DNA of 64,000 nucleotides, from positions 1 through 64,000 of the IMG/VR virus record IMGVR_UViG_3300042473_001540; one strand, given 5' to 3'. Every line of letters begins with the position of its first letter. Position 1 is the first letter of the stretch. The position numbers and the translations under genes were made by a program. Below are positions 3,730-62,639 of this stretch, piece after piece. The notes under the pieces are model-generated. The model saw only the letters and a list, made by a program, of their open reading frames with translations, was not told the DNA's origin and searched no databases.

Positions 3730-3780
3730 CATAATCCCCATGTCTTGCTATATAAGAGAATAGCCAAAAGGATAGACCTT
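3726..3780 (+). promoter_or_regulatory. Sigma70 promoter plus leader hairpin motif
   Basis: TTGACA-17-TATATA, then AAAAGGATAGACCTT at 3766-3780. Confidence 0.7.
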
Positions 3781-3808
3781 GCGGCAGATTGAGCAAAGGA
3801 TTTTTGCG

Positions 3809-5724: not shown

Positions 5725-6282
5725 ATGGTTATGACTGCACGAGCCTACCGGCATTTACGCGATCTCATCTCGGAAAAAAGTTTGATTCAAGATCAAAACT
5801 TCACTCTCAGCAGTGGAGCAGCCAGCAACTACTTCTTCAACATGAAGATCTCCATGTTGGATCCCATGGGCAGCAATCTCATTGCTGATGCTATGCTGGA
5901 TATTCTCGATACATTGGATTTTGACAGCGTAGGAGGGATGGCTGTGGGCAGCGTTCCGTTGGTTACCAGCATTGCCACCAAAAGCTACCTACGCAGTCGC
6001 CATTATCCAGCTTTCTTTGTGCGAAAAGAAGTGAAAGATCACGGCGTGCAAACAAAGATTGATGGCCACTGCACTCCGGGTAGCCGAGTGGTGCTGGTGG
6101 AAGATGTGACTACTACTGGAGGCAGCATCATGCGGGCTGTTGAGGCTGTGCGGGAGATTGGTTGCCAAGTGGACACAGTGCTCACAGTCGTTGACCGACT
6201 GGAAGGTGCGCGAGAGAATCTATCAGCAGAAAAGATTCGCTTGATCCCCCTCTACACACGAGTTGATTTTGAGGATTCATAA
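5725..6282 (+). CDS. pyrE: Orotate phosphoribosyltransferase
   Basis: FTLSSG, RKEVKDHG, PRPP motif VLVEDVTTTGGS. Confidence 0.9.
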   Translation: MVMTARAYRHLRDLISEKSLIQDQNFTLSSGAASNYFFNMKISMLDPMGSNLIADAMLDILDTLDFDSVGGMAVGSVPLVTSIATKSYLRSRHYPAFFVRKEVKDHGVQTKIDGHCTPGSRVVLVEDVTTTGGSIMRAVEAVREIGCQVDTVLTVVDRLEGARENLSAEKIRLIPLYTRVDFEDS

Positions 6283-6285
6283 ATT

Positions 6286-7017
6286 ATGATTATAATTCCT
6301 GACTCTCCCATTGCAGTTACACATCTAAAAAGGCCTATTATTCTCCCAGGAACTCCTTTACCAGATTATGTGGTGGAGAAAATACTCGCAAGTGAACAAG
6401 TTATTGACGATGATGACTCCTCCTTTGAAACAATGTTTTCTGGGGCAAAACCAATTGATTCGTCCGGCTTTACTGGGGCAGTGACTCAGTGGGTTGAAGG
6501 AGAACTTGGAAGTTTAGGGTATCCTATAAATCACAGCAGAGGGATTGACGTACCGCCCTACAGTATCGAGATCAGAACTCGCAGAAAACACGCTACAGCT
6601 CCACAAACTTTTGGGTCTCTCAAACTATCAGATATAATTCAAAACTCATGGCTTACATCTGATATCAAAACAAAGTGTCAACTCCACTATCAAGTGATGT
6701 GGGATGCGCAACACATGGTTGTTTGTGACGATCAAATCGTGGATTTCCGACATCCTTGGAGACAAGAGGCGTTACAAAAAGCTTTTGATAATGCTAGGGA
6801 TGAGCTGATTGCATACTATTCTAGGCCCAATATTACAGTGCCTTTGAAATTCACTTCGACTGCTGGCGGAATTTATCTTGAAAGAACTTCAAGGAAGAAC
6901 AGCAAAAAAAGCTGGTTCTCAGCATTTTACCAGTTTCGAGTACGAAACAATTTGATGGAAAAATGGCATATAGCGGGCAGGAAAAACTCATACGATGAGC
7001 TGTTTTCAAAAATTTAA
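6286..7017 (+). CDS. Hypothetical protein, possible PD-(D/E)xK-like nuclease
   Basis: 243-aa ORF with AT-richer codon use; GID...IEIRTR weakly nuclease-like. Confidence 0.45.
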   Translation: MIIIPDSPIAVTHLKRPIILPGTPLPDYVVEKILASEQVIDDDDSSFETMFSGAKPIDSSGFTGAVTQWVEGELGSLGYPINHSRGIDVPPYSIEIRTRRKHATAPQTFGSLKLSDIIQNSWLTSDIKTKCQLHYQVMWDAQHMVVCDDQIVDFRHPWRQEALQKAFDNARDELIAYYSRPNITVPLKFTSTAGGIYLERTSRKNSKKSWFSAFYQFRVRNNLMEKWHIAGRKNSYDELFSKI

Positions 7018-7020
7018 AAG

Positions 7021-7080
7021 TTGACGTAATTGGGCATCTAGCCTATAAATATGACACAGGAAAAGGATAGACCTTTTCCT
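7021..7080 (+). promoter_or_regulatory. Sigma70/late promoter plus leader hairpin motif
   Basis: TTGACG-17-TATAAATA, then AGGAAAAGG-ATAGA-CCTTTTCCT. Confidence 0.7.
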
Positions 7081-7107
7081 TCACATACTGAACAAGGGAG
7101 ACTTGTT

Positions 7108-8517
7108 ATGTTCAATTACGATAGCGTCATTCTTGACGTCGACAGCTACAAATTCAGCCATCCGTGGCAACTTCCCCCAAACACCACACACATTCACAGC
7201 TACGTAGAAAGTCGCGGCGGACGCTTCCCTCGCACACTGTTTTACGGGCTCCAAATGTGGCTCAAGCGTCGGCTGGTGACTCCAGTGACCATGAGCGACG
7301 TGGACGAGGCTGCTGGATTGGCAGCCGCACACATGGTGCCTTTCCATCGGGAAGGCTGGGAATACATTGTGCGTGAGCACCAGGGCCGGTTGCCAGTAGA
7401 GATTCGAGCAGTGCCCGAAGGCATGGTGATCCCCACTCACAACGTGCTAGCCACTGTGGTGAACACCGATCCCAATGTGCCCTGGCTCACTAGCTTCCTA
7501 GAGACAGCTCTACTCCGTGCTGTTTGGTACCCCACCACAGTGGCCACACTCAGCTGGCATGCCAAGCAGACCATTCGAGCTGCACTGGGGAAGAGCAGCG
7601 ACAACCCCGAAGGCGAGCTTCTGTTTCGACTGCACGACTTTGGCGCTCGTGGCGTCAGCAGCGATGAAAGCGCTCAGCTGGGTGGCAGTGCTCACCTAGT
7701 GAACTTCCGAGGCACCGACACTGTTGCAGCCCTCCTTGCAGCCCGACGCTACTACACCGAGGCCATGGCAGGGTTTAGCATTCCGGCAGCAGAGCACAGC
7801 ACCATCACCAGTTGGGGTCGCGATGGCGAAGCTGAGGCCTATGGCAACATGCTCAAGCAGTTTGCCCGGCCAGGCAGCATCCTTGCAGTGGTGAGCGACA
7901 GCTACGACATCATGAACGCGGTCAACCACATCTGGGGCGAAACACTGCGAGACCGTGTGCTAGACAGTGGGGCCACCCTTGTGATTCGTCCCGACAGCGG
8001 TGATCCAGTTGTGGTGCCAGTTGATGTGGTTGAGGCACTTGGTGAGCGGTTTGGCTACACCGTCAACAGCAAGGGCTACAAGGTGCTGAACAAGAGTGTG
8101 CGTGTGATCCAGGGCGATGGCATGAACATTGACAGCATCAAAACCCTGTATGACAACCTCACAGCACGCGGCTGGAGTGCAGAAAACGTGGCTGTGGGCA
8201 TGGGCGGCCAACTCTTGCAAGGTATTACTCGCGACACCAATCGATTTGCGATGAAAGCTTCAGCTGCCTGTATTGATGGGGAATGGCGCGAGGTATATAA
8301 GGATCCTATTACAGACAAAGGAAAAACATCCAAGAAAGGTAAAGTTACCCTTTGGCAGTCAGGTAACCAATTTCAAACAAGCGTTAACACTCCTCTACGC
8401 GGTCTTGAGAATGGTGTGGTGTGGACCGACGTTCTGCAGACAGTCTACCGGAATGGACGCCTTCTCATTGATCAATCATTCCAGGACATTAGAGATCGAT
8501 CTGAGAAAGTCTTTTAA
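7108..8517 (+). CDS. nadV: Nicotinamide phosphoribosyltransferase (NAMPT)
   Basis: DSYKFSH, LHDFGARG, SIPAAEHS, VSDSYD, IRPDSGDP, IQGDG motifs. Confidence 0.95.
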   Translation: MFNYDSVILDVDSYKFSHPWQLPPNTTHIHSYVESRGGRFPRTLFYGLQMWLKRRLVTPVTMSDVDEAAGLAAAHMVPFHREGWEYIVREHQGRLPVEIRAVPEGMVIPTHNVLATVVNTDPNVPWLTSFLETALLRAVWYPTTVATLSWHAKQTIRAALGKSSDNPEGELLFRLHDFGARGVSSDESAQLGGSAHLVNFRGTDTVAALLAARRYYTEAMAGFSIPAAEHSTITSWGRDGEAEAYGNMLKQFARPGSILAVVSDSYDIMNAVNHIWGETLRDRVLDSGATLVIRPDSGDPVVVPVDVVEALGERFGYTVNSKGYKVLNKSVRVIQGDGMNIDSIKTLYDNLTARGWSAENVAVGMGGQLLQGITRDTNRFAMKASAACIDGEWREVYKDPITDKGKTSKKGKVTLWQSGNQFQTSVNTPLRGLENGVVWTDVLQTVYRNGRLLIDQSFQDIRDRSEKVF

Positions 8518-11181: not shown

Positions 11182-12591
11182 ATGACACCCGCTACAACGA
11201 CAGCCAAAACTATTGAAAAATCCAGTGATATGGATGCAACCAAACTGTATCTCAAGCAGGTTGCCAAAAACAAGTTGCTTACACATCAGCAGGAAATTCA
11301 ATTTAGTCAACAAATTGAAAACAGCAAGAAAAACCTGCTCTTGAATCTGTTCTCTATTCCTATGGCAGTATGGCAGTTTGATACCAAGATTCAAGGTGTA
11401 GTAAAAGGGGAAATTGACAGCCACAGCATTTTTGACATTGAAGAAACAGAACTAGCCCCTCTGCTCACAAATCTAGCAAACATTCAACAGGATATTATGC
11501 TGTTAAGCACCAGCCCCAATAGTGAACTCTGTCAACGAGTGGCTGAAACCTGTTCTTCGCTGAGTTTCAAACTCAGCTTTTACGACAGCATGGTTCAGCC
11601 CTTCAACGACATGGTGAAAGACATTATTAGCGCACAAGGAGCTTACCTGCGCTTTGCACAAAGCAAAGGAGTCTCTCGTGAGTTGTTCCTAGCCGCATAC
11701 CAAAGCATGTCACAAGACAAAAATTGGCTGCGGTTCAAAACAGTTCACCAAGCCGAAGTGGAAAAGCATGAGTCGCAACTAGCAAGTTTTGTTGCCAACA
11801 CGGGTATGCCACTTGACACACTCCTTGAAAAATGCCGCCAGATTCGGCAAGAGCAAAAAAACAAGGACGAGGCAGTGGAGATTATGCTCAAGAGCAATCT
11901 TCGACTCGTGGTGAGTGTGGCAAAGAAATACACCAACATCAGTCAAACTCCCATTCTTGATCTCATTCAAGAAGGCAACATTGGTCTCTTGAAAGCTATT
12001 GAGAAGTTTGATTGGAAGATGGGATTTCGTTTCAGCACCTACGCCACTTGGTGGATCAAGCAGTGTGTGCTGAAAGCCTTGAATGAGCATCATCGTATCA
12101 TTCGTATCCCAGCTCACATGAGCGACCTTGCCAAGAAGGTAACGCGAGCACGAGCTGAGTTTGTAAATCACAATGGTTTTGAGCCCAGTGTGCAAGAAAT
12201 TGCAGAGATGCTGGAAATTGATGTGGAAAACGTAGACAAAGTCTACAGTGTTGCGCAGGGCACAATCTCTCTGGAAACGCCAATTGGCGGTGAAGAAGAT
12301 CAAACCATTGCACATCTTATTGAAGACACTGAAGGGGTGAATGCGTTTAACCTCTTGGCTGAGGCTGACAGCGCATATGCAGTGTCAGAGGTCTTGAAAC
12401 ATCTCAGTCCCAAGGAAGAGCGTGTGATCAGGATGCGCTTTGGTATTGGTGTAAACGAACAAAGCACACTGGAAGACATTGGCAACAAATTTGGTGTCAC
12501 TCGTGAGCGTGTGCGCCAGATTGAAAGCAAAGCACTGGAAAAGCTCAAGAGTACGGAACTAGCTCAGAAGCTGCAAGAAGCTTTTACCTAA
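11182..12591 (+). CDS. rpoD: RNA polymerase sigma70 factor (RpoD-like)
   Basis: NLRLVVSVAKKY, DLIQEGNIGLLKAIEKFD, FSTYATWWI, TRERVRQIE. Confidence 0.9.
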   Translation: MTPATTTAKTIEKSSDMDATKLYLKQVAKNKLLTHQQEIQFSQQIENSKKNLLLNLFSIPMAVWQFDTKIQGVVKGEIDSHSIFDIEETELAPLLTNLANIQQDIMLLSTSPNSELCQRVAETCSSLSFKLSFYDSMVQPFNDMVKDIISAQGAYLRFAQSKGVSRELFLAAYQSMSQDKNWLRFKTVHQAEVEKHESQLASFVANTGMPLDTLLEKCRQIRQEQKNKDEAVEIMLKSNLRLVVSVAKKYTNISQTPILDLIQEGNIGLLKAIEKFDWKMGFRFSTYATWWIKQCVLKALNEHHRIIRIPAHMSDLAKKVTRARAEFVNHNGFEPSVQEIAEMLEIDVENVDKVYSVAQGTISLETPIGGEEDQTIAHLIEDTEGVNAFNLLAEADSAYAVSEVLKHLSPKEERVIRMRFGIGVNEQSTLEDIGNKFGVTRERVRQIESKALEKLKSTELAQKLQEAFT

Positions 12592-14472: not shown

Positions 14473-18564
<4,092 letters not shown>

Positions 18565-25024: not shown

Positions 25025-25133
25025 TTGCCATCGAGGTTGGAACAGCCTCCCAACACACCATGAGAATGGTAACTAGCCGGCAGCAATCACCTAGCTGGTG
25101 AAGAAATCCGGAAGTGGCATCCGGCGATGGCGA
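25025..25133 (+). ncRNA. Candidate multibranch RNA
   Basis: TTGCCATCG/CGATGGCGA closing stem with four internal hairpins. Confidence 0.45.
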
Positions 25134-29832: not shown

Positions 29833-30183
29833 ATGCCACTACGAGACGAGGACAAGAAGCTGTGGCAACAGGTGATGCAAGGGGTTAAGCCATTAACCAC
29901 TGCAACTCAAGTCCCCTTGCCTCAGTCTCTCCCAAAAACAAGTTCGTCATACCATAATCCCCTTCACACTTGGGATTTACATGGCATGACCTTGAGCGAA
30001 GCCTATCAAAGAACTATTGAACAAGTGTCAAACAAACATTTTCCCAGTCTAACCTTCATCACTGGCAAAAGTGGATTGATGCAACAGGAATTTTCACATT
30101 GGTTGGAGAAGAATCCAGCTGTGCAGCGTGTGGAAAGTTTGCCAGGTGGTGGGGCCTTCCGGGTGTATCTCAAGAAAAAATAA
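29833..30183 (+). CDS. Smr-domain protein
   Basis: DLHGMT, ITGKSG, GGGAFRVYL. Confidence 0.85.
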   Translation: MPLRDEDKKLWQQVMQGVKPLTTATQVPLPQSLPKTSSSYHNPLHTWDLHGMTLSEAYQRTIEQVSNKHFPSLTFITGKSGLMQQEFSHWLEKNPAVQRVESLPGGGAFRVYLKKK

Positions 30184-30257
30184 GCAGGTATGGTGTAATA
30201 GGAACTCAGTGCGTTGCCAACGCACAGTCGCCGGAGCGTTACCGGCTACCTGCTCCA
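30184..30257 (+). tRNA. tRNA-Gly(GCC), atypical T loop
   Basis: GTGCG-TTGCCAA-CGCAC; U73; CCA. Confidence 0.8.
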
Positions 30258-30305
30258 AACTTCCTTCTGTAAATATCCCAAACTGTTTACAGAAAGGACA
30301 AAAAA

Positions 30306-30698
30306 ATGGAAATAGTTGTAACGCGTCAACCCTCAGCCAATGGCTGCACAATTGGCACCATGAACATTGACGGAGCATTTGAATGCTACACTCTAGAGGA
30401 TGTGGTTCGTCCCAACGGAGAAAAAGTCTATGGCCAAACTGCTATCCCTGAGGGTCGCTATCAAATCAAGCTGACCATGAGCAACAGATTCAAGATTGTG
30501 TTGCCACTGTTGGAAAACGTACCAAACTTTGAGGGTGTGAGAATACATCCAGGCAACACAGCAGCTGACACTGATGGATGCATATTGGTGGGTCAAACCA
30601 AAACTAGCAACAGCATTGGATCAAGCCGAGTGGCTTTTGACAAGTTGTTTTCACGATTGCAGGCCCACAAGGGAGAAATTTGGCTCACTGTAAAATAA
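30306..30698 (+). CDS. DUF5675-family protein
   Basis: CYTLED, TAIPEGRY, IHPGNT..DTDGCILVG. Confidence 0.75.
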   Translation: MEIVVTRQPSANGCTIGTMNIDGAFECYTLEDVVRPNGEKVYGQTAIPEGRYQIKLTMSNRFKIVLPLLENVPNFEGVRIHPGNTAADTDGCILVGQTKTSNSIGSSRVAFDKLFSRLQAHKGEIWLTVK

Positions 30699-30763
30699 GT
30701 TGGTTGCACGACTCCTTTTGTTTGTTTAGACTTCAACTCTGAACTTACAAAAGGAGAAGTTTT

Positions 30764-31390
30764 TTGTTCAATTTACAAGCTATTGATCGAAGTTTGTTGT
30801 GGAAGCTGGTGTGTTTCCACACATTTGTAATTGCTCTCAGCAATTATCTAGTGACAATCAAATTTTCAATGTTTGGATTGCCGCTAACCTGGGCTGCATT
30901 TACTTTCCCACTTATTGTGGTGGCAACTGACTTAACTGTGCGGTTGGTTAACAAAGAAAATGCACGAGCTATTGTTAGTGCAGCTTTTGTGCCAGCAATT
31001 ATTGCCAGCATTGCTGTTGTGTATCTCAGCGGTGCTCCCTCAAGTGTGGCTTGGCGTATTGGCCTTGCATCTGGTGTTGCTTACCTCTTCAGTAACCTTA
31101 TGGACGTGTTTGTGTTTCAAAAGGTGAGAGAGCGACTTCAAATGTGGTTTTGGGCACCTGCCATCTCAGCTGTGTTTGCCAACATTGTAGACACCTTTGT
31201 GTTCTTTGCTGTAGCCTTTTACAACAGTGCTAACGCCTATATGGCAGCCAACTGGCACATTCTTGCATTGAATCAAACTGGAGCCAAGGTGCTGGTATCA
31301 GCAGCAGTGATTCTGCCCATTTATGGTGTGCTGTTGGCTTGGTTGCAAACCCGAGTTGAACGAGACATTATGGGGCCAACAGGCTCATAA
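30764..31390 (+). CDS. yhhQ: Queuosine precursor transporter (VUT family)
   Basis: SNYLV, TWAAFTFP..ATDLTVRL, DTFVFFAVAF; multi-TM. Confidence 0.8.
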   Translation: MFNLQAIDRSLLWKLVCFHTFVIALSNYLVTIKFSMFGLPLTWAAFTFPLIVVATDLTVRLVNKENARAIVSAAFVPAIIASIAVVYLSGAPSSVAWRIGLASGVAYLFSNLMDVFVFQKVRERLQMWFWAPAISAVFANIVDTFVFFAVAFYNSANAYMAANWHILALNQTGAKVLVSAAVILPIYGVLLAWLQTRVERDIMGPTGS

Positions 31391-31398
31391 AAGGTTTT

Positions 31399-31472
31399 CG
31401 TCCTGTAGCTCAACTGAATAGAGCATTTGAATCCTAGTCAAAAGGTTGCGAGTTTGAATCTCGCCAGGACGT
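31399..31472 (+). tRNA. tRNA-Arg(CCT)
   Basis: TTTGA-ATCCTAG-TCAAA; Arg-type D loop. Confidence 0.75.
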
Positions 31473-31537
31473 TGACACAAACGGAAACTGTGTAATAATA
31501 GTATAGATATCCATTGCAGGAAGGAATTTAAATACCT

Positions 31538-31730
31538 TTGATGCACAGACGCCAGTAACCTGCGTTTGTGAGGGCAAGCTGGGATTTTGAGCTTGTCCTG
31601 TGAGAGTGATCAAATTGTTCTCTCTCCAAAATCAAAATCGAGATTGACAAAAATGTCAACTTCGTATTTTGGCGTGAAAGTCTTGTGCTTTCATGCAAAA
31701 GTTGTCTCTGTCATTTTGACTGCGGCAATC
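31538..31730 (+). ncRNA. Hairpin-chain leader upstream of cell-wall hydrolase
   Basis: About six back-to-back stem-loops with G-U pairs. Confidence 0.4.
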
Positions 31731-31752
31731 CAAGAAAAGAAGGAGCATTGCT

Positions 31753-32301
31753 TTGAAAACTATCTTATGGCTAGCCTTTGCAGGGCTGCTGTTGATCATC
31801 AAGCCAGTAACCGCACAAACATACGGTTTCAACAGTTATACAGCACAACTTACAAGTGTTCAGCCTTTGACAGCTGATCCCAATAGTGTCAAGGAAATCA
31901 TTTGCATGAGCCTCAACATTTACCATGAGGCCCGGGGCACAAGCCTTGCCAATCAAATTGGCGTTGCACATGTAACCAGAAACCGGCACAAACAAAAGAA
32001 AATGAGCATTTGTGACGTAGTGTTTGAAAGAAAAGGGGCGTCAGCTCAATTTTCCTGGAGCAACAAACCAGGTGCCAAACAAAAGCGTCTTGAGATTGAA
32101 AGTTGGGACCGGGCACAAGAAATTGCCTACAGCGTTCTCTACACCAAAACTCACGACATCACAAAAGGTGCAACGTATTTTCACGAAAAAACCATACGTC
32201 CTGTTTGGGCTTCACGAGCTCGGGAAAAAACAGCCATTGGTGCACATGTTTTTATTCGACTGGAAGAAGTTGCTGAGGCTCGGCCAGTAACGTTGCCGTA
32301 A
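31753..32301 (+). CDS. SleB-like cell wall hydrolase
   Basis: CMSLNIYHEARG, QFSW, GATYFH, IGAHVF; signal peptide. Confidence 0.85.
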   Translation: MKTILWLAFAGLLLIIKPVTAQTYGFNSYTAQLTSVQPLTADPNSVKEIICMSLNIYHEARGTSLANQIGVAHVTRNRHKQKKMSICDVVFERKGASAQFSWSNKPGAKQKRLEIESWDRAQEIAYSVLYTKTHDITKGATYFHEKTIRPVWASRAREKTAIGAHVFIRLEEVAEARPVTLP

Positions 32302-32316
32302 GCAACGCTACTGGTC

Positions 32317-32922
32317 TTACCATCTTGCATTATCCTCAAATCCAGCATCTTCTAGTTCTTTTTGACAATCAAACATGGCACGTTTGCCTTGTCCTGCGTA
32401 TTTGTTCAAGATTGTTTCAACAGTCGTGTGATTCATTGCTGACCGCAACGAGATACTTTTGGCTGCCAAACAACGGAGCAGTGGAAGAGTAGGCGTGTAA
32501 GGTATAGCCAAGTAATTGAGCTCTGAAGGCATACCTTGGAGTGAGGTTAATGGGTTGAGGTGACAACTAAAAAGATCACCAACACTGCTGGGAGCACCTT
32601 CCAGTGAAGTCAGTTGGTTGTTGAAGCATACGAAACTTCCAACCACATTCTTGGGTGCAGCTTTAAGTGAAATAAGTTGGTTACTTGAGCCTAAGAAACT
32701 TCCACCAACACTCTCTGGCGCCCCGTCCAGTGTGGTTAGTTGGTTGTAATCGCACTGGAAGTGTCCAAGAACACTCTTGAAACGCACAGGGAACTGGGGT
32801 AATTGTCTTTTAAGTATAACATTACCCTGGCAAGTGATCAACCCCTCAGGATCTATTGTGACTTGGCCTGTTGTTTTGAAATTAGCTTTCAACAAAGCCA
32901 TTACTTCTTTTTTGTCTACCAT
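32317..32922 (-). CDS. LRR-like cassette protein 9
   Basis: LRR-like repeats plus conserved C-terminal block. Confidence 0.85.
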   Translation of the reverse strand: MVDKKEVMALLKANFKTTGQVTIDPEGLITCQGNVILKRQLPQFPVRFKSVLGHFQCDYNQLTTLDGAPESVGGSFLGSSNQLISLKAAPKNVVGSFVCFNNQLTSLEGAPSSVGDLFSCHLNPLTSLQGMPSELNYLAIPYTPTLPLLRCLAAKSISLRSAMNHTTVETILNKYAGQGKRAMFDCQKELEDAGFEDNARW

Positions 32923-33668
32923 CTTGCATTCCCTTCAAATCCAGCATCTTCCAGTTCTTTTTGGCAGTCAAACATGGCACGTTTGCCTTGACCCATATAC
33001 TTTTGCAGAATAGCCCGCACCTCGTGTGGCCATCCCATACCCGACCACAGTTTTTTAGCATTTAAACAACGCAAGAGCGGCAGAGTGGGGCTGTAGTCAA
33101 TCCATAAAACCCTTACTTCAGTAGGCATTCCTTCAAGTGACTCTAGCTGATTACCCCATGCTCTCAACTCGCCAGTGATGGTTTTTGGTGCACCGTGTAG
33201 TGAGACTAGTTTGTTTTCCATGCAAAACAAATCATGCACTTTCTCAGGAACATGTTCCAGTGATGAGAGTTGATTTGTCATACAAGAGAAATTGGCACCA
33301 ACTGATTTGGGACAGTGTTCAAGGCTTTCTATGTTGTTATTATCGCATTTGAAATCTCCGCCCACATGTTGAGGCGAACCCAACAAACTGGTGAGTTGGT
33401 TGTGGCCACACTTGAAATCTCTACCTACCCAAGAGGGTGCGCCTTCTAGACTCACCAGATCGGTATGCTGTACAGCAAAATCGTAGCGTATTTTTCCAAA
33501 CCTTACCCGCAAGGTTTTTATACCTGGCTTACCATCAAGGTAAGATTTCTCCTTGCTCTTGACACTGCCTGTGCAGGATATCAATCCTGTGTTGGGATCA
33601 ACAGAGAGTTTACCTGTGTGAGAGTAATATTTGTCAAAAGTTTTTTTGATCCCGGCTAGATCTACCAT
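32916..33668 (-). CDS. LRR-like cassette protein 8
   Basis: Same; 7-nt ATGGTAG start/stop overlap. Confidence 0.85.
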   Translation of the reverse strand: MVDLAGIKKTFDKYYSHTGKLSVDPNTGLISCTGSVKSKEKSYLDGKPGIKTLRVRFGKIRYDFAVQHTDLVSLEGAPSWVGRDFKCGHNQLTSLLGSPQHVGGDFKCDNNNIESLEHCPKSVGANFSCMTNQLSSLEHVPEKVHDLFCMENKLVSLHGAPKTITGELRAWGNQLESLEGMPTEVRVLWIDYSPTLPLLRCLNAKKLWSGMGWPHEVRAILQKYMGQGKRAMFDCQKELEDAGFEGNARW

Positions 33669-34279
33669 CGTGCATTTCCTTCAAATCCAGAGTCTTCCAA
33701 ATCTTTTTGGCAGTCAAACATGGCAGCTTTGCCTTGACCTGCATATTTGTTCATGATTTCTTGAACCTTCTGGGGTGGCTCCGATTCATCAACCCTATGC
33801 ATGAATACAATTTTTTTGGCAACCAATGCACGTAGCAAAGGCAAAGTGGGCGAATATTGTAACACTAGTCGCCCTAAACCTTCTTGCGGTATGCCTTCAA
33901 GACTTTCAAGTGGATTGCCCACACAACTCAAAGATCCAAGAACTTTTTTGGGTGCACCTTGCAAGCTCTTGAGCTGGTTGAACCCACATAAGTAGTGTTC
34001 GCCAACAGCATCAGGACCGCCTTCAAGAGTTTGTAAATTGTTCTCAGTACAACGAAATTCATTGTAGACATATTTGGGAGATCCTTGAAGGCTTGTGAGC
34101 CCCATGCCCCCCACATCAAATCCTTCCACTTCATAAAAGCCAACTGGCAACTTCTTAACATGCAACATAAGCGTTACGTAACCTTTTGTGCTTATTGTTC
34201 CATCAGAATTGATTACAATGCTTTCATTACATTGAAAATAATCATCAAAAGTTTTTTTGATGTTATCAACGTCTACCAT
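33662..34279 (-). CDS. LRR-like cassette protein 7
   Basis: Same. Confidence 0.85.
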   Translation of the reverse strand: MVDVDNIKKTFDDYFQCNESIVINSDGTISTKGYVTLMLHVKKLPVGFYEVEGFDVGGMGLTSLQGSPKYVYNEFRCTENNLQTLEGGPDAVGEHYLCGFNQLKSLQGAPKKVLGSLSCVGNPLESLEGIPQEGLGRLVLQYSPTLPLLRALVAKKIVFMHRVDESEPPQKVQEIMNKYAGQGKAAMFDCQKDLEDSGFEGNARW

Positions 34280-34911
34280 TTTGCATGATCCTCAAATCCA
34301 GCGTCTTCCAAATCTTTTTGGCAATCAAACATGGCACGTTTGCCTTGGCCAGCATATTTGTTCAAAATTGTCTGCACTTTTCCCTTCTCCACAGTGTGAG
34401 TGTCGTCAGCAGGCTCTAAAAATATATGCCTTGCTGCCAAGGTACGTAAGAGAGGCAAATGTGGTAGATACGGTAACCAAGCTGCATTTTCCACTTTCAA
34501 CGGAAATCCATCCAAGCTTTTCAACGGATTACCAATGCAATTGAAATTATTGGGTATCTGGACAGGTGCCCCCTTCAAATCAACAAGTTGATTATGGTCA
34601 CAGTAGTAGTTCCAACCTACAATTTCTGGCCCCCCACTAAGGCTTTTGAGCATGTTACGTGAACAGTCAAAACTCACGCCCACTTCAGGGGGACAGCCTT
34701 CCAAGGTTACTAGTGCGTTCTCATCTAACGATAGATTTTCAGTTACAGCTTTGAAGGCAACTGGCAGTTTTTCAAAACGTGTATAGTGGAGATTCAACAA
34801 TTGAATATCGCCATTTACTGTTACCAGTCCATCTGATGAAACTTTTGCACTGTTGTAGTCAAAGCTGAAATGGTCTTTCAATAACTGCAAGATTTCTCGT
34901 TTGTTTACCAT
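34273..34911 (-). CDS. LRR-like cassette protein 6
   Basis: Same. Confidence 0.85.
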   Translation of the reverse strand: MVNKREILQLLKDHFSFDYNSAKVSSDGLVTVNGDIQLLNLHYTRFEKLPVAFKAVTENLSLDENALVTLEGCPPEVGVSFDCSRNMLKSLSGGPEIVGWNYYCDHNQLVDLKGAPVQIPNNFNCIGNPLKSLDGFPLKVENAAWLPYLPHLPLLRTLAARHIFLEPADDTHTVEKGKVQTILNKYAGQGKRAMFDCQKDLEDAGFEDHAKW

Positions 34912-35564
34912 CTGGCGTTGTCCTCAAATCCGGCATCTTCCAATTCTTTTTGACAATCAAACATAACACGTTTTCCTTGCCCCAAATATTTTTCCAAAAT
35001 GTATAACACCTTCCAGGCATCGCTGCCCTCGCTTTGATACGGCCAAAAAATAATCTCTGGTGCCACCAATGTGCGCAACAAAGGCAGCTGAGTATCATAA
35101 GTGATATACAAACTATCTCCAATTTTTTGAGGAAAGCCCTGCAAGCTCTCTAGAGGATTGGCTGAACAATTGAACACACTGGGGATTTCTCTAGGTGCCC
35201 CTTCCAAATCCTTCAATTGATTTTTACTGCAATTATAACTGCCGCCAAATGTGGGTGTTTGTGTCGTGCCTATTGTTTTGGGTCCAAACTTCAAACTTTT
35301 GAGTTCATTATTGTCACACTCAAAATTCTTACCAACAGTTTCTGGACAACCCTCTAGTGTCTTGAGTTGGTTGATGCTGAGCATCATACTGCCTTCAATG
35401 TGAGAAAATTTCACCGGTAGTTCTTGAAAAGAACTGTGAAATTTGTTGTATAACACAACGTCTCCCATGACACTGACTTTGCCAGCTGGATCAACAATGG
35501 GGTCCCCATCTACCATGAAATGTTGAGTTAGCGTGTTCAACACATGCTGTTTGACGTCTACCAT
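34905..35564 (-). CDS. LRR-like cassette protein 5
   Basis: Same. Confidence 0.85.
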   Translation of the reverse strand: MVDVKQHVLNTLTQHFMVDGDPIVDPAGKVSVMGDVVLYNKFHSSFQELPVKFSHIEGSMMLSINQLKTLEGCPETVGKNFECDNNELKSLKFGPKTIGTTQTPTFGGSYNCSKNQLKDLEGAPREIPSVFNCSANPLESLQGFPQKIGDSLYITYDTQLPLLRTLVAPEIIFWPYQSEGSDAWKVLYILEKYLGQGKRVMFDCQKELEDAGFEDNARW

Positions 35565-36163
35565 CTTGCATTTCCTTCAAAGCCCGCATCTTCCAGTTCT
35601 TTTTGGCAATCAAACAGGGCACGTTTGCCTTGTCCTGCGTATTTGTAAAATATTCCTTCAATTGTTAGAAGTTTGCTTTGCATAACATTGTGGGCATACA
35701 GCATTAGGCCCTGTTGGCAGTTCAAAGCTCGAAGCAAGGGCAATTTATTGTGATAATTTATGCTCAAGTGTTGGCCTACTCGTTGGGGAAACCCAGCAAG
35801 ACTCAACACTGGAACCTCTTGTCTAAATCCCACACGACCTGAAACCTCAAGGGGCCCACCTGTCATGTCTTTCAAAGGATTTTTGTTGGCAGTGAATCTG
35901 CCTCCCACAATCTGCGGACAACCTTCAAGACTGGAGAGTCCACATCTGTCTAAAATCAAACTGGCATGGCAAACGCCAAATTTTACAGGCAGTTTTCCAT
36001 TGGGAAACGGTCCTTGTATGGCCAAGAGCACACCATATCCTGGTGTGATCTCCTGCACATTTACTATACCACTATCTTCAATTTGAAAGCGCACCCGGTT
36101 GTCTGCCTCACCATTACGAAAATAAGTGTTCAACATGTGCTGAACTTCTTGTTTGTCTACCAT
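35558..36163 (-). CDS. LRR-like cassette protein 4
   Basis: Same. Confidence 0.85.
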   Translation of the reverse strand: MVDKQEVQHMLNTYFRNGEADNRVRFQIEDSGIVNVQEITPGYGVLLAIQGPFPNGKLPVKFGVCHASLILDRCGLSSLEGCPQIVGGRFTANKNPLKDMTGGPLEVSGRVGFRQEVPVLSLAGFPQRVGQHLSINYHNKLPLLRALNCQQGLMLYAHNVMQSKLLTIEGIFYKYAGQGKRALFDCQKELEDAGFEGNARW

Positions 36164-36756
36164 CTTGCATTTCCTTCAAATCCAGCATCCTCTAGATCTT
36201 TTTGACATTCAAACAGGGCACGCTTGCCCTGTCCTTTGTATTTTTCAATTATTTCTTCAATGGGATTAGTGTTAAAGGATGATGAGCTCAATATTACACC
36301 ATCTTGGCAAGCTAACGTGCGCAGCAGCGGCAACTTGTCATGGTAAGGCAGTTTAGCATAGTCACCCACCCTATCAGGAAAACCATCCAAACTCTCTAAT
36401 AGGTTTTTCTGCATCCCAAGCCAAAACCTACCTGTGACTTCTTTGGGCCCACCCTTGAAATTTTTCAATTGATTGCCAAGTGCAACAAAATTGCCTTGGA
36501 TTACAGGGGGACAACCAACCAAGTCCACGATTTGATTCCGGTCCAATTTTAAGCTGGCTTTGAACAAGCCAAATCTCACAGGCAACTGACCTCCAGGGAA
36601 GGGTTTGTCCTTAATAGTGCGGAGATGGCCGCGACCAGGAGTCAGCTCAAGCACATTAACCAAGCCCTCAGGACCTATGTCAAATTTCACAGCGTCATTT
36701 GGCTCAAAGAAAAAATACTCTGCCAACAGTTCCAAAATTTCCCTTTTGTCTACCAT
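36157..36756 (-). CDS. LRR-like cassette protein 3
   Basis: Same. Confidence 0.85.
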   Translation of the reverse strand: MVDKREILELLAEYFFFEPNDAVKFDIGPEGLVNVLELTPGRGHLRTIKDKPFPGGQLPVRFGLFKASLKLDRNQIVDLVGCPPVIQGNFVALGNQLKNFKGGPKEVTGRFWLGMQKNLLESLDGFPDRVGDYAKLPYHDKLPLLRTLACQDGVILSSSSFNTNPIEEIIEKYKGQGKRALFECQKDLEDAGFEGNARW

Positions 36757-37571
36757 TTGGCGTTCCTTTCAAATCCTGCGTCTTCCAATTCTTTTTGACA
36801 GTCAAACAGGGCTCGTTTGCCCTGGCCTGCGTATTTTTTCAAGATGGTTTCCACTTGAATATACTTGCCCCACAGCACAGGCCAAAAATTGACCTTCTGG
36901 GCTACCAAAAGCCGTAACAAGGGCAAATCGGATTTGTAACTGACTTCAATCAAATCAGGAGTTTGGGAGCCTAACCCCTCAAGATTTTCCAAGGGATTGT
37001 GATCAAAAATAAACTGCTTGGAAATATTCAAAGAGGCACCTTTGAGTGTTGTGAGCTTGTTGTTGGTTGCCCAAAAATATTCCACGGTCTGTGGTGCGTC
37101 TTGAAGATCAGTCAAGAGATTTTTACTGACATCAAACATACCACCTATTTGCAGGGGAGCACCTCGCAAACTCACTAAATTGTTGTTGTATGCAATGTAT
37201 TCTTGTGTAAAGTCTCGTGGACTTCCCAACAAATCTGAGAGTTTATTATTCTGGCAAGAATATTGTCCTTTTACTGTTTTTGGGCCACCAACCAAGCTGA
37301 TCAACTGGTTTTCACTGCAATCAAATGTGTCCAAGACAGTGTGAGGACAGCCTTCAAGTGTTTCCAACTTGTTCCTGTGACAGAGAAAATTGCCTTCCAC
37401 CACTCCAAATCTCACAGGCAATCGAGAGGTCTCTTTGCTCAACAAAATTGATCCATGAGCATCTACAACACCTGTATCATGTATAGTGAAAAGGGTACTT
37501 TCCCAACCAAAGTATTCATTCAGTAACTGACGAACAGTTGTTTTGTCTTGTGGGAATTCCTGGTTTACCAT
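36750..37571 (-). CDS. LRR-like cassette protein 2
   Basis: Same; longest member. Confidence 0.85.
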   Translation of the reverse strand: MVNQEFPQDKTTVRQLLNEYFGWESTLFTIHDTGVVDAHGSILLSKETSRLPVRFGVVEGNFLCHRNKLETLEGCPHTVLDTFDCSENQLISLVGGPKTVKGQYSCQNNKLSDLLGSPRDFTQEYIAYNNNLVSLRGAPLQIGGMFDVSKNLLTDLQDAPQTVEYFWATNNKLTTLKGASLNISKQFIFDHNPLENLEGLGSQTPDLIEVSYKSDLPLLRLLVAQKVNFWPVLWGKYIQVETILKKYAGQGKRALFDCQKELEDAGFERNAKW

Positions 37572-38221
37572 CGTGCATTTTCCTCAAAACCCGCATCTTC
37601 CAATTCTTTTTGGCAGTCAAACAAAGCACGTTTGCCTTTGCCTGCATAACTGTTCAAAATTTTATGTAACTGCTGGAATTTTCCTTCGTTTCCTCGCTTA
37701 TATTGCATAGGCACAATAAGGTCCACATGCAAGGCTCCTAATGTTCTCAACAGTGGTATTGTGGGACTATACGTCAATGTTACCCAAGCAATGCTCTTGG
37801 GCAAGTGGTCAAGTGACTCCAGTGGGTTGTCTTGAATCTCCAGATTGTCAGATACTGTGTCCGGCAAACCTTGTAGAGAAGTCAACTTGTTGCTATTGAG
37901 AAGGATACTGCCACTGACCCAATGCGGAAAACTGGTTAACTTTGATAGCAAGTTGAAGCTGGCGTCGAAATCTCCTTCAATCTCAAATGGGCATCCTTCC
38001 AAGGTTCTTAGATTCTTGTTGTTGCAGGTGAAGGTACCATGCACCTTACTGAAACGCAAAGGTAACTGAGATTGAGGCCGCGTTAGGTGTAAGTCACCAG
38101 CCACAACAATCTTACCATCTTGATCAAACATCCAACCAGCTGGATATAAGGCATTGCTCTCTATCTTGAAGTTCTGGCTCAAGATGGTTTTGGTTTGTTC
38201 ATATTCCACATCACTTACCAT
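37565..38221 (-). CDS. LRR-like cassette protein 1
   Basis: Same. Confidence 0.85.
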   Translation of the reverse strand: MVSDVEYEQTKTILSQNFKIESNALYPAGWMFDQDGKIVVAGDLHLTRPQSQLPLRFSKVHGTFTCNNKNLRTLEGCPFEIEGDFDASFNLLSKLTSFPHWVSGSILLNSNKLTSLQGLPDTVSDNLEIQDNPLESLDHLPKSIAWVTLTYSPTIPLLRTLGALHVDLIVPMQYKRGNEGKFQQLHKILNSYAGKGKRALFDCQKELEDAGFEENARW

Positions 38222-38358
38222 CTTGCATGCAGTCCTACGCCAGAGTCTTCCAACTCTTTTTGGCAGGCAAACAAAGCACGTTTGCCACTCTCTGAATCAA
38301 CATTGTAGGTGCCAAAAACATTGAACCAGCTCTCAAAATCTTCAATGGGCTGAGGCAT
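38215..38358 (-). CDS. 47-aa mini cassette made mostly of the conserved C-terminal block
   Basis: MPQPIEDFESWFNVFGTYNVDSESGKRALFACQKELEDSGVGLHARW*; coupled at both ends. Confidence 0.65.
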   Translation of the reverse strand: MPQPIEDFESWFNVFGTYNVDSESGKRALFACQKELEDSGVGLHARW

Positions 38359-38678
38359 TATTTGCCCAACTCATTCAAGGTGTCCACATCCACAAAAGTT
38401 TTGTCTGTGCCTGAGGTCATTATACAAGTGAGGCTCTCACTTTGTCCAGGCACGCTGAGAGTATTTGTTACTAAGATTTCTTTTTGAGGGTTGATCCATA
38501 CTGACACCATCTGGGTTTGAAACTGACTTACAATAACAGGCTGGTAATTTTCCTTCTTAAACATAGCAAAAGCTTGGCTTGTGGTTGTGCAAAGTTTTTT
38601 GCTGTCAACAGGGGTCCAAGCTTGGGCACATGATATGGTTAGCAGAGAAAAAGCTAGAGACAAAATGGGGAGACGCAT
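38358..38678 (-). CDS. Secreted hypothetical protein
   Basis: Signal peptide MRLPILSLAFSLLTISCAQA; TAAATA upstream. Confidence 0.65.
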   Translation of the reverse strand: MRLPILSLAFSLLTISCAQAWTPVDSKKLCTTTSQAFAMFKKENYQPVIVSQFQTQMVSVWINPQKEILVTNTLSVPGQSESLTCIMTSGTDKTFVDVDTLNELGK

Positions 38679-38805
38679 CAGAAAGTCCTTGAGGTTTTTC
38701 CTATTTATCAAAGGTTGACGGTGGCGAAAAAACCGCGTATAACAATGATGTTGAAGCGCACTACACGGTGTGTGGCAAACAAAAGGAGACTATATACTAC
38801 TGGAT

Positions 38806-40124: not shown

Positions 40125-40248
40125 GGATCCGTGGTCTAATTGGATAAGGCAAGAGCCTTCCGGTCCCGCAGGTAGCATTCAAGGTTCGAATCCTTGGGGA
40201 CCGCTCCTAAGCTCTTCGATGGGGGTTCGAATCCCTCCGGGTCCGCCA
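40125..40248 (+). tRNA. tRNA-Arg (probably TCT) with 47-nt tRNA-mimic insertion in anticodon
   Basis: GGATCCG/CGGGTCC-GCCA; AGAGC/GCTCT stem; two TTCGAAT T arms. Confidence 0.8.
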
Positions 40249-40280
40249 CTTACTACACTCTTATAAAAGAACCCAACCTA

Positions 40281-41072
40281 ATGCAACCACTCACCCCCGA
40301 TCAAACCCAACGCATAAAAGAATTATGGCATCAAGCCGAAGGAATTGTGATCTTGGCTGGTGCCGGCATGAGTGTAGACAGTGGCTTGCCAGATTTTCGA
40401 GGCGCCACAGGCTTGTGGACCGAGGCCAAAGAAAACTTTCTCAAGAAAGCTACAGCCAAAAGTTTTGACACCAATCCCCTTGAGGCTTGGAACTTTTACG
40501 TTGGCCGCATGATTAAATATCAAGACACTGTCCCACATGAGGGTTACAAGATCCTCCTGGATCTCCTACAATCACACAACAAAAAAAGTTTTGTAGTAAC
40601 CAGTAATGTTGATGGCCATTTTTTGAAAGCTGGTTATGACCCACAATATCTCTATGAGATACATGGCAATCTGCGAAAAATTCAGTGCACTCAACCCTGT
40701 TGCCGAAACTTACCCTCTATGCCAAAATTTTCTTCCCTGCTCACCTCAGAACAGGAAATCCCCAAATGCCCCTACTGCAACAAGAATGCTCGACCAAATG
40801 TGCTGATGTTCAACGACCCAGGGATTGTTTGGACACAAATTGATCAAGGTCAAGAAAATTTTCGGAATTGGGCAGCATCAAAGATGGAGGTTTTGGGTAT
40901 TGAAATTGGTGCAGGAACTGGAATCCCCAGCATTAGGATCTTTGGTCAAGAACGCACCACTAACTTGATTCGCATCAATCCACATGAGTTTGAAACTTCA
41001 CGTACAAGTGATTTAGGAATCTCTGCCGGTGGGTTAGAAGGGATACGGGCCCTAGAGAGGGCTGTGGGCTAG
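40281..41072 (+). CDS. Sir2-family NAD-dependent deacylase
   Basis: GAGMSVDSGLPDFRG, TSNVDG, EIHG, CxxC pairs, RPNVLMF. Confidence 0.9.
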   Translation: MQPLTPDQTQRIKELWHQAEGIVILAGAGMSVDSGLPDFRGATGLWTEAKENFLKKATAKSFDTNPLEAWNFYVGRMIKYQDTVPHEGYKILLDLLQSHNKKSFVVTSNVDGHFLKAGYDPQYLYEIHGNLRKIQCTQPCCRNLPSMPKFSSLLTSEQEIPKCPYCNKNARPNVLMFNDPGIVWTQIDQGQENFRNWAASKMEVLGIEIGAGTGIPSIRIFGQERTTNLIRINPHEFETSRTSDLGISAGGLEGIRALERAVG

Positions 41073-47192: not shown

Positions 47193-47266
47193 GGCCCCAT
47201 AAGACAAAGGTAGTCAGCTGGACTCTAAATCCAGTGGTGTGAGTTCAAATCTCACTGGTGCCACCA
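47193..47266 (+). tRNA. Amber suppressor tRNA (CTA)
   Basis: CTGGA-CTCTAAA-TCCAG; TTCAAAT; ACCA; own TTGACG-17-TATACA promoter. Confidence 0.85.

Positions 47267-51356: not shown

Positions 51357-53024
<1,668 letters not shown>

Positions 53025-60395: not shown

Positions 60396-62638
<2,243 letters not shown>

Positions 62639-62639
<1 letters not shown>

Follow-up and report, generated by a model that had tools for sequence, protein, structure and literature searches.

The stretch of viral DNA analysed here, which we call the window, covers positions 1 to 64,000 of the IMG/VR record IMGVR_UViG_3300042473_001540 and represents the terminal 64 kb of a single 180,697-bp viral contig, window position 1 being the contig end. 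Its minus strand carries, at 32317-38221, nine consecutive paralogous open reading frames (ORFs; g1 to g9) of 199-273 aa, which form a chain of leucine-rich repeat (LRR) cassettes joined by a near-constant block of DNA (Table 1). A first-pass annotation made from the letters alone had described nine tandem genes of these sizes, and their kinship is now established: the E-values of the nine cassettes against the family profile, 1e-40 to 1e-106, are far beyond chance and mark them as true paralogs, which differ from one another by about 50% at the protein level. The same annotation had called the N-termini divergent and the repeat about 22 aa long; the N-termini are instead moderately conserved (MVDKxE..LL..YF), and the period is 21 aa, the value measured for 95 of the 106 spacings between units, in a set of 171 units drawn from 71 proteins. 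It had also given the array the interval 32317-38358. The nine genes account for this interval as far as 38221, and the remainder is a 47-aa mini-ORF that had gone unmentioned and that we count as the tenth element of the array.

Table 1. The array, its junction blocks and associated features in window coordinates; L051 denotes a 94-kb scaffold whose array is flanked by the same genes as that of the window.
Feature	Position	Strand	Description
g1, LRR cassette	37565-38221	minus	218 aa; orthologs L051 99%, L037 63%
g2, LRR cassette	36750-37571	minus	273 aa, longest of the array; orthologs L051 92%, L037 56%
g3, LRR cassette	36157-36756	minus	199 aa; sister paralog of g4; L051 ortholog 89%
g4, LRR cassette	35558-36163	minus	201 aa; L051 counterpart 199 aa, 87%
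g5, LRR cassette	34905-35564	minus	219 aa; L051 counterpart 88%
g6, LRR cassette	34273-34911	minus	212 aa; L051 counterpart 93%; ends HAKW
g7, LRR cassette	33662-34279	minus	205 aa; absent from the syntenic relative L051
g8, LRR cassette	32916-33668	minus	250 aa; L051 counterpart g8' 251 aa, 64%
g9, last LRR cassette	32317-32922	minus	201 aa; L051 ortholog 92%; protein whose structure was modelled
Junction blocks	32317-32406, 32916-33005, 33662-33751, 34273-34362, 34905-34994	minus	constant, ~90 nt each (last 29 codons and stop)
Further junction blocks	35558-35647, 36157-36246, 36750-36839, 37565-37654	minus	~90 nt each
Mini-ORF, C-block only	38215-38358	minus	47 aa; tenth element, internally deleted first cassette
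Small secreted protein gene with signal peptide	38358-38711	minus	117 aa; probable start ATG at 38678; L051 ortholog 96%
Eleventh family member	43-687	minus	214 aa; starts MALTTE; heads a second array running off the contig end
Hairpin, 14 bp	32284-32314	minus	right after the g9 stop; -27.1 kcal/mol, z = -4.4
Sigma-70-like promoter candidate, TGGACA-18-TATAAT	38419-38448	minus	11/12 consensus matches; ~60 nt upstream of the mini-ORF
L051 c0			183 aa; window counterpart is the 47-aa mini-ORF (deleted form); first 26 residues alike, one substitution
L051 cX			202 aa; between g2 and g3; no window counterpart

The mini-ORF and the 117-aa gene ahead of it share the sequence TAATG, in which the stop of the latter overlaps the start of the former, so that this signal-peptide gene, for which Pfam gave no match, heads the translational chain. 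At the other end, the hairpin also covers the 3' end of a convergent cell-wall hydrolase gene and has no U-run behind it; it probably marks the end of the operon. The promoter candidate is a consensus match only, of a kind not enriched over shuffles, the array holding 16 promoter-like sites for 12.1 expected and 9 terminator-like sites for 9.4 expected. Downstream of the array (29833-32301) lies a conserved set of accessory genes, for a Smr-domain protein, a DUF5675 protein, a VUT-family transporter, a tRNA-Arg and the SleB-like cell-wall hydrolase, in an arrangement that is syntenic in the related loci L001 and L051. The contig stops 42 nt past the 214-aa gene. Beyond window position 1 the second array goes on in L018 and L026 with a 265-aa cassette and then another; L018 9363-10926 spans this continuation, in which the W-stop/ATG junction of the 214-aa gene opens the next cassette.

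The array is no product of assembly, since its ten elements recur with 100% identity in three other IMG/VR assemblies and twelve lake-water runs hold 98-99% of its sampled words. All the runs that hold it are lake-water metagenomes. Furthermore, exact contigs from four further runs bridge g8/g7, g6/g5, g5/g4, g3/g2 and g2/g1 in the usual order. Nine read 'joints' between blocks, with sides of 34-76 nt and 80% likeness, were taken as cross-mapping between paralogs and not as rearrangement.

The cassette proteins are genuine LRR proteins of the bacterial short-unit (LPX-like) class, with the unit consensus LTSLEGAPxxVGGxFxCxxNx. A profile of 44 sequences matched, in the PDB, YopM (4ow2, E 5.9e-18), SspH2 (3g06, 1.5e-17), InlJ (6e-15), the LRR domains of IpaH proteins (1e-11 to 1e-5) and SlrP, the weakest match listed having an E-value of 1e-4; all these matches span profile positions ~41-164 only, that is the LRR part. 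The AlphaFold model of g9 (predicted local distance difference test, pLDDT, 96.5; predicted template-modelling score, pTM, 0.91) consists of an N-terminal helix cap, a beta-solenoid, a strand-helix-strand segment, two helices and a nine-residue tail. Its VIA-align matches are exclusively LRR proteins (Z 8-10.6 over ~140-180 residues), and structures of variable lymphocyte receptors (VLRs) are among its fold matches. The Foldseek TM-scores of the whole model to PDB entries are low, 0.3-0.45 for YopM/IpaH-type structures; its closest relatives over the whole length are unnamed viral proteins, and the bacterial clusters of the AlphaFold database mostly align to residues ~1-160, without the C-terminal part.

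This last part, of about 60 residues, is the second component of the family, and we call it the C-module. Modelled alone it forms a three-helix unit (pLDDT 82.6), for which we found no Pfam match at E up to 10, no PDB sequence match, no Foldseek match and no named cluster among its Atlas neighbours. A profile of the C-module matched 964 representatives at 50% identity, 235 of them at E <=1e-10. The 150 best matches consist almost entirely of proteins 170-310 aa long that carry the module at their extreme C-terminus; about a dozen are stand-alone modules of 47-92 aa, one is a 1,640-aa protein with 12 partial matches, and none has a clearly different architecture. The search with the whole protein gave 1,173 relatives, almost all unnamed metagenomic proteins, which NCBI and JGI call 'hypothetical' or, spuriously, 'DUF1330', and the Atlas neighbours are overwhelmingly Uroviricota. 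The combination of LRR and C-module is thus a large family, of about 1,000 clusters at 50% identity, found only in viral or metagenomic sequence.

Known families do not account for it. Pfam gave nothing for the nine proteins at E <=0.01, DUF7941 included, PHROGs gave just weak matches to the unknown-function groups 21719 and 7816, and no anti-defence family turned up in these two scans, no search having been made in PADLOC-type libraries. The array matched none of 50,697 phage records by blastn; tblastn with g2 found the LRR part only, in huge uncultured phages and two Vibrio phages. The genomes of 185,579 cellular species, scanned with a single exact peptide pattern of limited sensitivity, yielded one spurious Rhizobium match, which neither of two hidden Markov models recognised. 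In the literature on phage LRR arrays we found no description of this family. As far as the libraries and the literature searched show, the C-module, the family and its chained architecture are undescribed.

What holds the chain together is the end of each gene. The cassettes all finish in a near-constant ...KYAGQGKRAMFDCQKELEDAGFExNARW, and neighbours overlap by exactly 7 nt, A-TGG-TAA or A-TGG-TAG: the last base of an arginine or lysine codon, followed by TGG and the stop, reads as ATG GTA in the next frame, and all nine proteins begin MV. A purine-rich Shine-Dalgarno (SD)-like core, GAGGA or AAGGA, stands 7-10 nt ahead of each overlapped ATG at all nine junctions. Each junction block encodes the last helix and the tail of the C-module and, in the same stretch, holds the SD-like core and the overlapped ATG at which the following cassette starts. 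The first-pass annotation had seen all this, the block with its RBS-like (ribosome-binding-site-like) stretch and the next ATG, the constant overlap and the MV starts, and it was right at every junction. The ATG left dangling after the last gene, to which it had drawn attention, is also there but constitutes no extra feature, since it follows automatically from the conserved arginine, tryptophan and stop codons (AGA TGG TAA). That the cassettes would be translationally coupled is a reasonable reading of an SD-like core inside the block and a stop overlapping a start.

The window also contains a tRNA with the anticodon CTA (47193-47266; labelled Pyl by ARAGORN), a potential amber suppressor. 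No sign of recoding accompanies it. Recoding of the stops by this tRNA was rejected as an explanation of the junctions: read-through at the six TAG junctions would add just 1-20 residues, and all three stops are in use genome-wide, long ORFs ending in TAA 80 times, in TAG 45 times and in TGA 64 times.

The conservation of the block proved to be chiefly a matter of protein. Over the last 29 codons the mean pairwise proportion of nonsynonymous differences (pN) is 0.10, against 0.48 in the rest of the gene, whereas the synonymous proportion (pS) is 0.59 against 0.79. Compared pair by pair, the nine genes share no exact nucleotide stretch longer than 10-29 nt, and this longest stretch lies nearly always in the block. 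With synonymous sites so near saturation and exact matches so short, the block must be kept mainly by purifying selection at the protein level, and recent gene conversion homogenising the window's own blocks is ruled out. A DNA-level component can nevertheless be discerned: codon pairs encoding identical residues differ in the block at a frequency of 0.355, where codon usage predicts 0.565 (ratio 0.63), as opposed to 0.634 for 0.662 predicted elsewhere (ratio 0.96). Moreover, the variable residue before NARW is limited to G, D, E or R, whose purine-rich codons keep the SD core. This extra constraint appears modest; it would fit the embedded SD core, and also occasional exchange. The comparison of synonymous sites proposed in the first-pass annotation thus gave a divided answer, near saturation together with a mild conservation, at 63% of expectation.

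The junction reaches far beyond this array. The sampled loci contain 102 distinct C-module ends, 72 of which are A-TGG-TAR; 64 of these 72 enter another ORF of at least 100 aa and the remaining 8 dangle at array ends, while an SD-like core stands 5-16 nt upstream in 58 of them. The 7-nt junction is kept in subfamilies of only 35-40% identity (L028, L034, L036). The L033 subfamily and the Ralstonia phage RsoM2USA, discussed below, end in L, M or I and have 4-nt or abutting junctions. Leader ORFs that hold only the C-block recur in L028, L029 and L040, where a 47-aa one precedes the first MV gene.

Comparison with related phages indicates how such arrays change. In the closest strains, L002 and L003, the order g5 to g9 is retained, and the sequence is 99-100% identical to the window except for a patch of ~480 nt over the body of g9 (80-91% nucleotide identity, dS 0.2). 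Over g9 and the genes downstream of it, L001 is ~96% identical; over g8 its nucleotide identity drops to 60-67%, to return exactly at the start of the g8 C-block. The g8 alleles of L001 and L051 are 97% alike and resemble that of the window by only 64-66%, which means that two deep allele classes segregate at the g8 slot. The order of L051 as a whole is c0, g1, g2, cX, g3, g4, g5, g6, g8', g9, the window's g7 missing. The boundaries of the cX and g7 indels are unresolvable within 140 and 121 nt, respectively, of block, junction and shared first codons, and this ambiguity is the footprint of unequal homologous exchange. The mini-ORF of the window is L051 c0 less 136 codons, removed in frame so that ...SESGK now runs into GQGK|RA in its own block. 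Since that deletion the block has diverged faster (86% nucleotide identity, 97% upstream) and its protein motif is decaying; the mini-ORF still keeps its start, its frame and its A-TGG-TAA junction to g1.

More distant loci behave alike. L024 and L022 are ~100% identical through a cassette, its block and ATGGTAGACAAA, then ~40% identical over exactly one cassette body, and 100% identical again in the next block; L019 and L004 show 100% identity until a block begins, after which come different cassettes of 183 and 244 aa. Array sizes range from 3 to 11 cassettes, and the syntenic L004 and L050 have 4 and 8. Reordering occurs as well: the orthologs of g1, g2, g4 and g5 sit in L037 as g2', g1', g4' and g5', and the cassettes A, B, C and D of L022 occupy positions 4, 2, 6 and 5 in L038, these permuted pairs having both starred support in the cassette tree and body-only reciprocal best hits. 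The tree left out g6, whose ending HAKW did not pass a filter for the C-terminal motif, and the orthology of this cassette was examined in comparisons of its own. Of the 12 breakpoint ends that could be mapped, 9 lie in the zone of block and junction, ~20% of array length; the corresponding binomial tail of ~1e-4 is informal, the ends being non-independent and the sample not unbiased.

These comparisons support, at the level of sequence, the idea of the first-pass annotation that the block acts as a recombination joint, at which whole cassettes are gained, lost, replaced and reordered between relatives: the L051 indels, the single-cassette swap between L024 and L022 and the permuted orders of L037 and L038 all speak for it. 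The cassette order, which the same annotation had proposed to compare, is fixed among the closest strains and changes only at ~90% identity and beyond. To call the system 'recombinase-free', as was also done, is not meaningful, since ordinary homologous recombination is implied. The other function that it had given to the block, a common docking domain, is plausible: the block is strongly conserved throughout the family and belongs to a novel three-helix module.

A second kind of variation affects the repeats themselves. Entropy over the 171 units peaks at unit positions 9, 14, 16, 18 and 19, the last four being the x of xFxCxxN on the concave strand. In a clade of recent paralogs (L015 528-2242, L018 10001-10798, L009 465-1136, L004 10001-10735), which includes the L018 gene following the window's 214-aa gene in the second array, the protein lengths of 223, 244, 265 and 307 aa differ by steps of 21. 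Their pooled dN/dS is 3.4 at the hypervariable positions, against 0.50 in the LRR scaffold and 0.41 outside the repeats. Across 29 of their 63-nt units the scaffold codons are virtually identical, with almost no synonymous differences, and positions 14, 16 and 18 differ in ~80% of unit pairs, by changes that affect only bases one and two of the codon. The same unit can be found unaltered elsewhere in another gene, which indicates shuffling at the level of the unit. Diversifying selection on the concave face, judged from these codon comparisons, is thus supported in recent paralogs of this sister subfamily, as the first-pass annotation had suggested should be checked, and its picture of variable binders gains credit from the hypervariability of concave-face positions. 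Its choice of targets does not: nothing identifies host defence proteins, nor receptors.

The only experimental lead on the location of these proteins comes from RsoM2USA, a 344-kb Ralstonia jumbo phage. Its tandem trio 90-89-88 (L048, 65163-67654), annotated as hypothetical, matches the family profile including the C-module with E-values of 2e-8, 4e-18 and 3e-16. Liquid chromatography-tandem mass spectrometry of purified virions, which gave ten bands, led to the assignment of one band to ORF89 (28.57 kDa) and of another to the adjacent ORF86 (PMC8504454). The mass that we compute for RsoM2USA_89 is 28.56 kDa. In a tblastn search this protein found no other isolate. No partner gene recurs beside the arrays, whose contexts differ between phages.

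The model we propose combines these observations. The region is one operon of nine LRR paralogs and one internally deleted paralog, each with a constant three-helix C-module, in which variation arises at three levels: in the four or five positions that every 21-aa unit exposes on its concave strand, xFxCxxN, under diversifying selection; in the number of units, by steps of 21 aa; and in the cassettes, gained, lost, replaced and reordered as a whole between related phages. The cassette events proceed by ordinary homologous recombination, with crossovers in the conserved DNA that encodes the C-module and the opening codons of the gene behind it. Because the same stretch carries the SD-like core and the overlapped ATG, an exchange occurring there would regenerate an intact, translationally chained operon. 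The concave face would bind variable targets, and the constant module would dock all the paralogs to one common partner. This partner may be a virion component, the proteins being borne on the virion for host recognition or ejected from it; this last step is a guess at slightly less than even odds, made because of the single proteomic observation on the distant RsoM2USA ORF89. As a whole, chained LRR binder operon, block as joint and docking to the virion, we give the model a probability of about 0.6, and in its architecture and evolution we have considerably greater confidence.

Several observations weigh against it. The mosaic patch of L002 and L003 begins within the body of g9 and not at the block. 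Within this phage population the cassette order is fixed, the three assemblies being identical and the four runs unchanged where bridged, and the short exact identity between the window's blocks (10-29 nt) implies that exchange is infrequent and concerns mainly homologous slots in related phages; chimeras can, besides, arise when repeats of this kind are assembled from short reads. The dN/dS contrast comes from the sister subfamily, one gene of which lies in the second array of the window phage and not in the nine-gene array; in the latter, divergence from orthologs is saturated and these positions are simply those with the greatest change. The units aligned in repeats of this kind may, moreover, not be true orthologs. 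As to the virion, the family member concerned is distant (profile E 4e-18, yet beyond the reach of BLAST), and the authors worded their band assignments as 'most likely correspond' (PMC8504454). Finally, the T4-type late promoter motif TATAAATA does not precede the array on its strand, and the sole promoter candidate, sigma-70-like, would be better suited to early expression than to a structural role.

This last point leads to the main rival of virion-borne binders, a purely intracellular role. The proteins would then be, much as the first-pass annotation had it, early, cytoplasmic binders for host takeover or anti-defence and no virion parts, with every LRR face directed at another host protein, such as a defence sensor, and with the constant module recruiting an effector or a protease or stabilising the fold. 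Besides the promoter candidate and the lack of a late motif ahead, this explanation can invoke the arrays of several phages that sit among non-structural accessory genes (gyrase/topoisomerase, AAA+, VWA-like, Hsp70, ClpS, rIIB), the use of the same LRR type by bacterial effectors on target proteins, the ATP-dependent protease that the phage itself carries, and an arms race compatible with diversifying selection and cassette turnover. We think it rather unlikely, as the single experimental result locates a protein of the family in virions, although packaged and ejected anti-defence proteins would still be compatible with that datum. The junction, for its part, could be a by-product: an ancestral gene ending in ...RW-stop would have been duplicated in tandem, the duplicated unit having its limits within the genes, and its block, kept for the sake of the protein, would recombine as the sole homology, with no self-chaining having been selected. 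Tandem paralog arrays with unequal crossing-over are indeed commonplace; the saturation of synonymous sites in the block (pS 0.59) with its short exact matches, the automatic origin of the overlapped ATG, which dangles at array ends in 8 of 72 cases, and the ordinary junctions, 4-nt or abutting, of the distant L033 and RsoM2USA subfamilies agree with such an origin, which we therefore take seriously, at well under even odds. It explains less readily why synonymous differences in the block amount to 63% of the codon-usage expectation, for 96% elsewhere, why the residue before NARW is restricted to purine-rich codons preserving the SD core, why the deleted first cassette retains frame, start and junction while its motif decays, why leader ORFs made of the C-block alone arose independently in L040, L028 and L029, and why the 7-nt junction persists over subfamilies of 35-40% identity.

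Two further explanations concern the origin of the variation and of the array itself, and both are highly improbable. Targeted hypermutation by a diversity-generating retroelement (DGR) or a similar enzyme is suggested superficially by variable codons with changes in the first two bases and a fixed third (NNT, NNC), a pattern recalling the adenine mutagenesis of AAY codons. The adenines of scaffold codons, however, never vary, TGG and AAA are present at variable sites, the 180-kb contig (~44% complete) contains no reverse transcriptase (no RVT_1) and no template/variable repeat pair, and the nine genes are unchanged in three IMG/VR assemblies and in exact contigs of four runs, all of which leaves this mechanism very little room. 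Even less is left for a metagenome assembly artefact of a repeated gene family. Contig ends do fall in arrays, at window position 1 and at both ends of the 71-kb contig described below, the blocks are where Logan unitigs break, and 'joints' of ambiguous meaning connect one block with another; but the array is identical in three assemblies from other samples, five of its junctions are bridged by exact contigs in four further runs, and paralogs with ~50% protein divergence are easy to assemble.

Several contigs bear on the phage that carries this chained operon. The 180,697-bp contig encodes a family-B DNA polymerase, an ATP-dependent protease, 18 tRNAs, a sigma factor, an NAD-salvage pair and collagen-like tail fibres, and the polymerase shares 42-47% identity with its counterparts in Atu_ph07 and in GAP32/CBB-type jumbo myoviruses (350-490 kb). 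The phage is a lake-water jumbo myovirus of the wider T4-like jumbo group. A 309,756-bp IMG/VR contig begins precisely where the window does and showed 100% identity in the two stretches compared, of 20.6 kb and 10.7 kb; another contig, of 71,398 bp and recovered from the same samples, carries family arrays at its two ends as well as in the middle and is flagged for 'inverted terminal repeats'. CheckV completeness is ~76% for the first, ~17% for the second and ~44% for the 180,697-bp contig. The assemblies break inside the arrays, and the true genome is probably ~380-400 kb long.

Other features of this genome deserve mention. The T4-type late promoter motif TATAAATA occurs at 8 window sites (e.g. 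7044, 12597, 21248, 41135) for 1.5 expected, a number reached by no shuffle, and this enrichment suggests that late transcription in this jumbo phage is of the gp55 type. A 469-aa RpoD/RpoS-like sigma factor is encoded at 11182-12591 (PHROG 351, E 1e-86). The NAD-salvage genes at 3779-4879 and 7051-8517 encode an NMN adenylyltransferase/Nudix-like protein and a nicotinamide phosphoribosyltransferase, and a Sir2-family protein is encoded at 40194-41072; together they may relate to NAD-depleting host defences. An Rfam tRNA match of 121 nt (40125-40245, 43.8 bits), not called by ARAGORN, overlaps the start of the Sir2-family ORF and may be intron-containing or degenerate. A skipping-rope RNA (RF02924) lies among tRNA genes at 25026-25132; its 44.5 bits exceed the gathering score. 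Genes for tail fibres of the collagen-like (Gly-X-Y) kind are found at 14473-18555, 51357-53015 and 60402-62639, and one of them, of 1,360 aa, accounts for the anomaly in base composition at 16-18 kb (GC 0.53, GC-skew -0.33). In G000, two Nol/NodU-like carbamoyltransferase genes occur at 5755-7452 and 64688-66292 (L042, L045), and a 789-aa ATP-dependent protease homolog at 84051-86420.

The family occupies a sizeable share of some jumbo-phage genomes, with no fewer than 11 genes in this phage, a number that probably rises to ~26 if the 71-kb sibling contig is part of the same virus, and its arrays explain the breaks of short-read assemblies in these genomes. It offers a clean natural case of modular binder evolution, with an invariant scaffold, three or four hypervariable contact residues in each unit, a variable number of units and cassettes exchanged at a joint that preserves expression; the scaffold, naturally validated, could guide the design of LRR binder libraries. 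If the constant module is a docking device, it would explain how many alternative binders are fielded at once, for host recognition or counter-defence. Could freshwater jumbo phages then hold a germline receptor-like repertoire, dozens of LRR binders with one docking module, displayed on the virion or delivered into the cell, diversified by contact-residue selection, unit shuffling and cassette exchange, in which one DNA element serves as module, as ribosome-binding site and start of the next gene, and as crossover site? We consider this doubtful as yet. If so, it would be a phage counterpart of VLR repertoires or of the LRR repertoires of the NLR (nucleotide-binding LRR receptor) type, with cassettes as plug-and-play parts, and a new principle of host-range or counter-defence evolution.

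Several known systems resemble the array in part. The DUF7941 'fiber cloud' of phage Goslar consists of jumbo-phage paralogs in which a constant module is combined with carbohydrate-binding, hydrolase or LRR domains, and which are found in virions with a proposed role in host recognition (bioRxiv 10.64898/2026.04.21.720040). Both systems place a constant module on variable binding domains, LRRs included; that of Goslar, however, is N-terminal, unrelated in sequence, restricted to chimalliviruses and not chained by a shared junction, and in the array the docking role is a proposal. The type III effectors YopM, SspH1/2, SlrP and IpaH share with the array proteins an LRR profile similarity (E 6e-18 to 1e-5), units of 20-22 residues (L..L....P..L...L.V..N) and a solenoid whose variable concave face is used for target binding. 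The array proteins differ by their 21-aa unit, their N-cap, their unique C-module, their size of ~200-270 aa, their occurrence in phages only and the lack of a secretion context. In place of the NEL E3-ligase domain of IpaH and SspH (~300 aa, with a catalytic cysteine), which is absent, about 60 residues without PDB, Pfam or fold match follow the LRR. Since the similarity is confined to the LRR region, NEL is lacking and the C-module is their own, they are not members of the IpaH/YopM effector family.

With the VLRs and engineered LRR libraries the array has in common a near-invariant scaffold, hypervariable residues on the concave beta-strand and the shuffling of whole units among copies with identical scaffold DNA. 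The assembly of lamprey and hagfish VLRs is somatic, driven by deaminases and accomplished within one organism, whereas the diversity of the array is germline, spread between genes and phages over evolutionary time, with no evidence of programmed rearrangement. DGRs also make variable phage binding proteins by focusing variation on few codons; here neither a reverse transcriptase, nor a template repeat, nor an adenine-specific pattern was seen. On the other hand, gene accordions such as the amplification of T4 tifA under host defence change the tandem copy number through short homologous sequences (PMC9391042). Recombination alters copy number in both cases, but accordion copies are recent, near-identical and serve dosage, while the array paralogs are old (~50% identity), individually diversified and stably ordered within the population.

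The closest known mechanism is the modular shuffling mediated by promoter early stem-loops (PeSLs) in T4-type phages, whose hyperplastic regions contain variable, mostly non-essential genes with short conserved flanks that act as points of homologous recombination (Arbiol et al. 2010, PMC2839356; Comeau et al. 2014, PMC4122927). No PeSL cassettes exist in the array, which has no intergenic DNA (7-nt overlaps) and has promoter- and terminator-like sites at shuffle level. The logic is nevertheless alike: a conserved element bears the expression signals and serves as the crossover point, so that a swapped gene stays expressed, and insertions, deletions and replacements between close relatives have their breakpoints in the conserved flank, as they do here. 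PeSLs are non-coding, a sigma-70-like early promoter and a terminator stem-loop set between unrelated genes, with one transcription unit per gene. In the array the element is coding, being the C-module of the upstream protein, its signals are translational, and the genes that it links are paralogs in one operon; if the constant module is indeed a docking device, the principle of joints that preserve expression would extend from non-coding to coding sequence.

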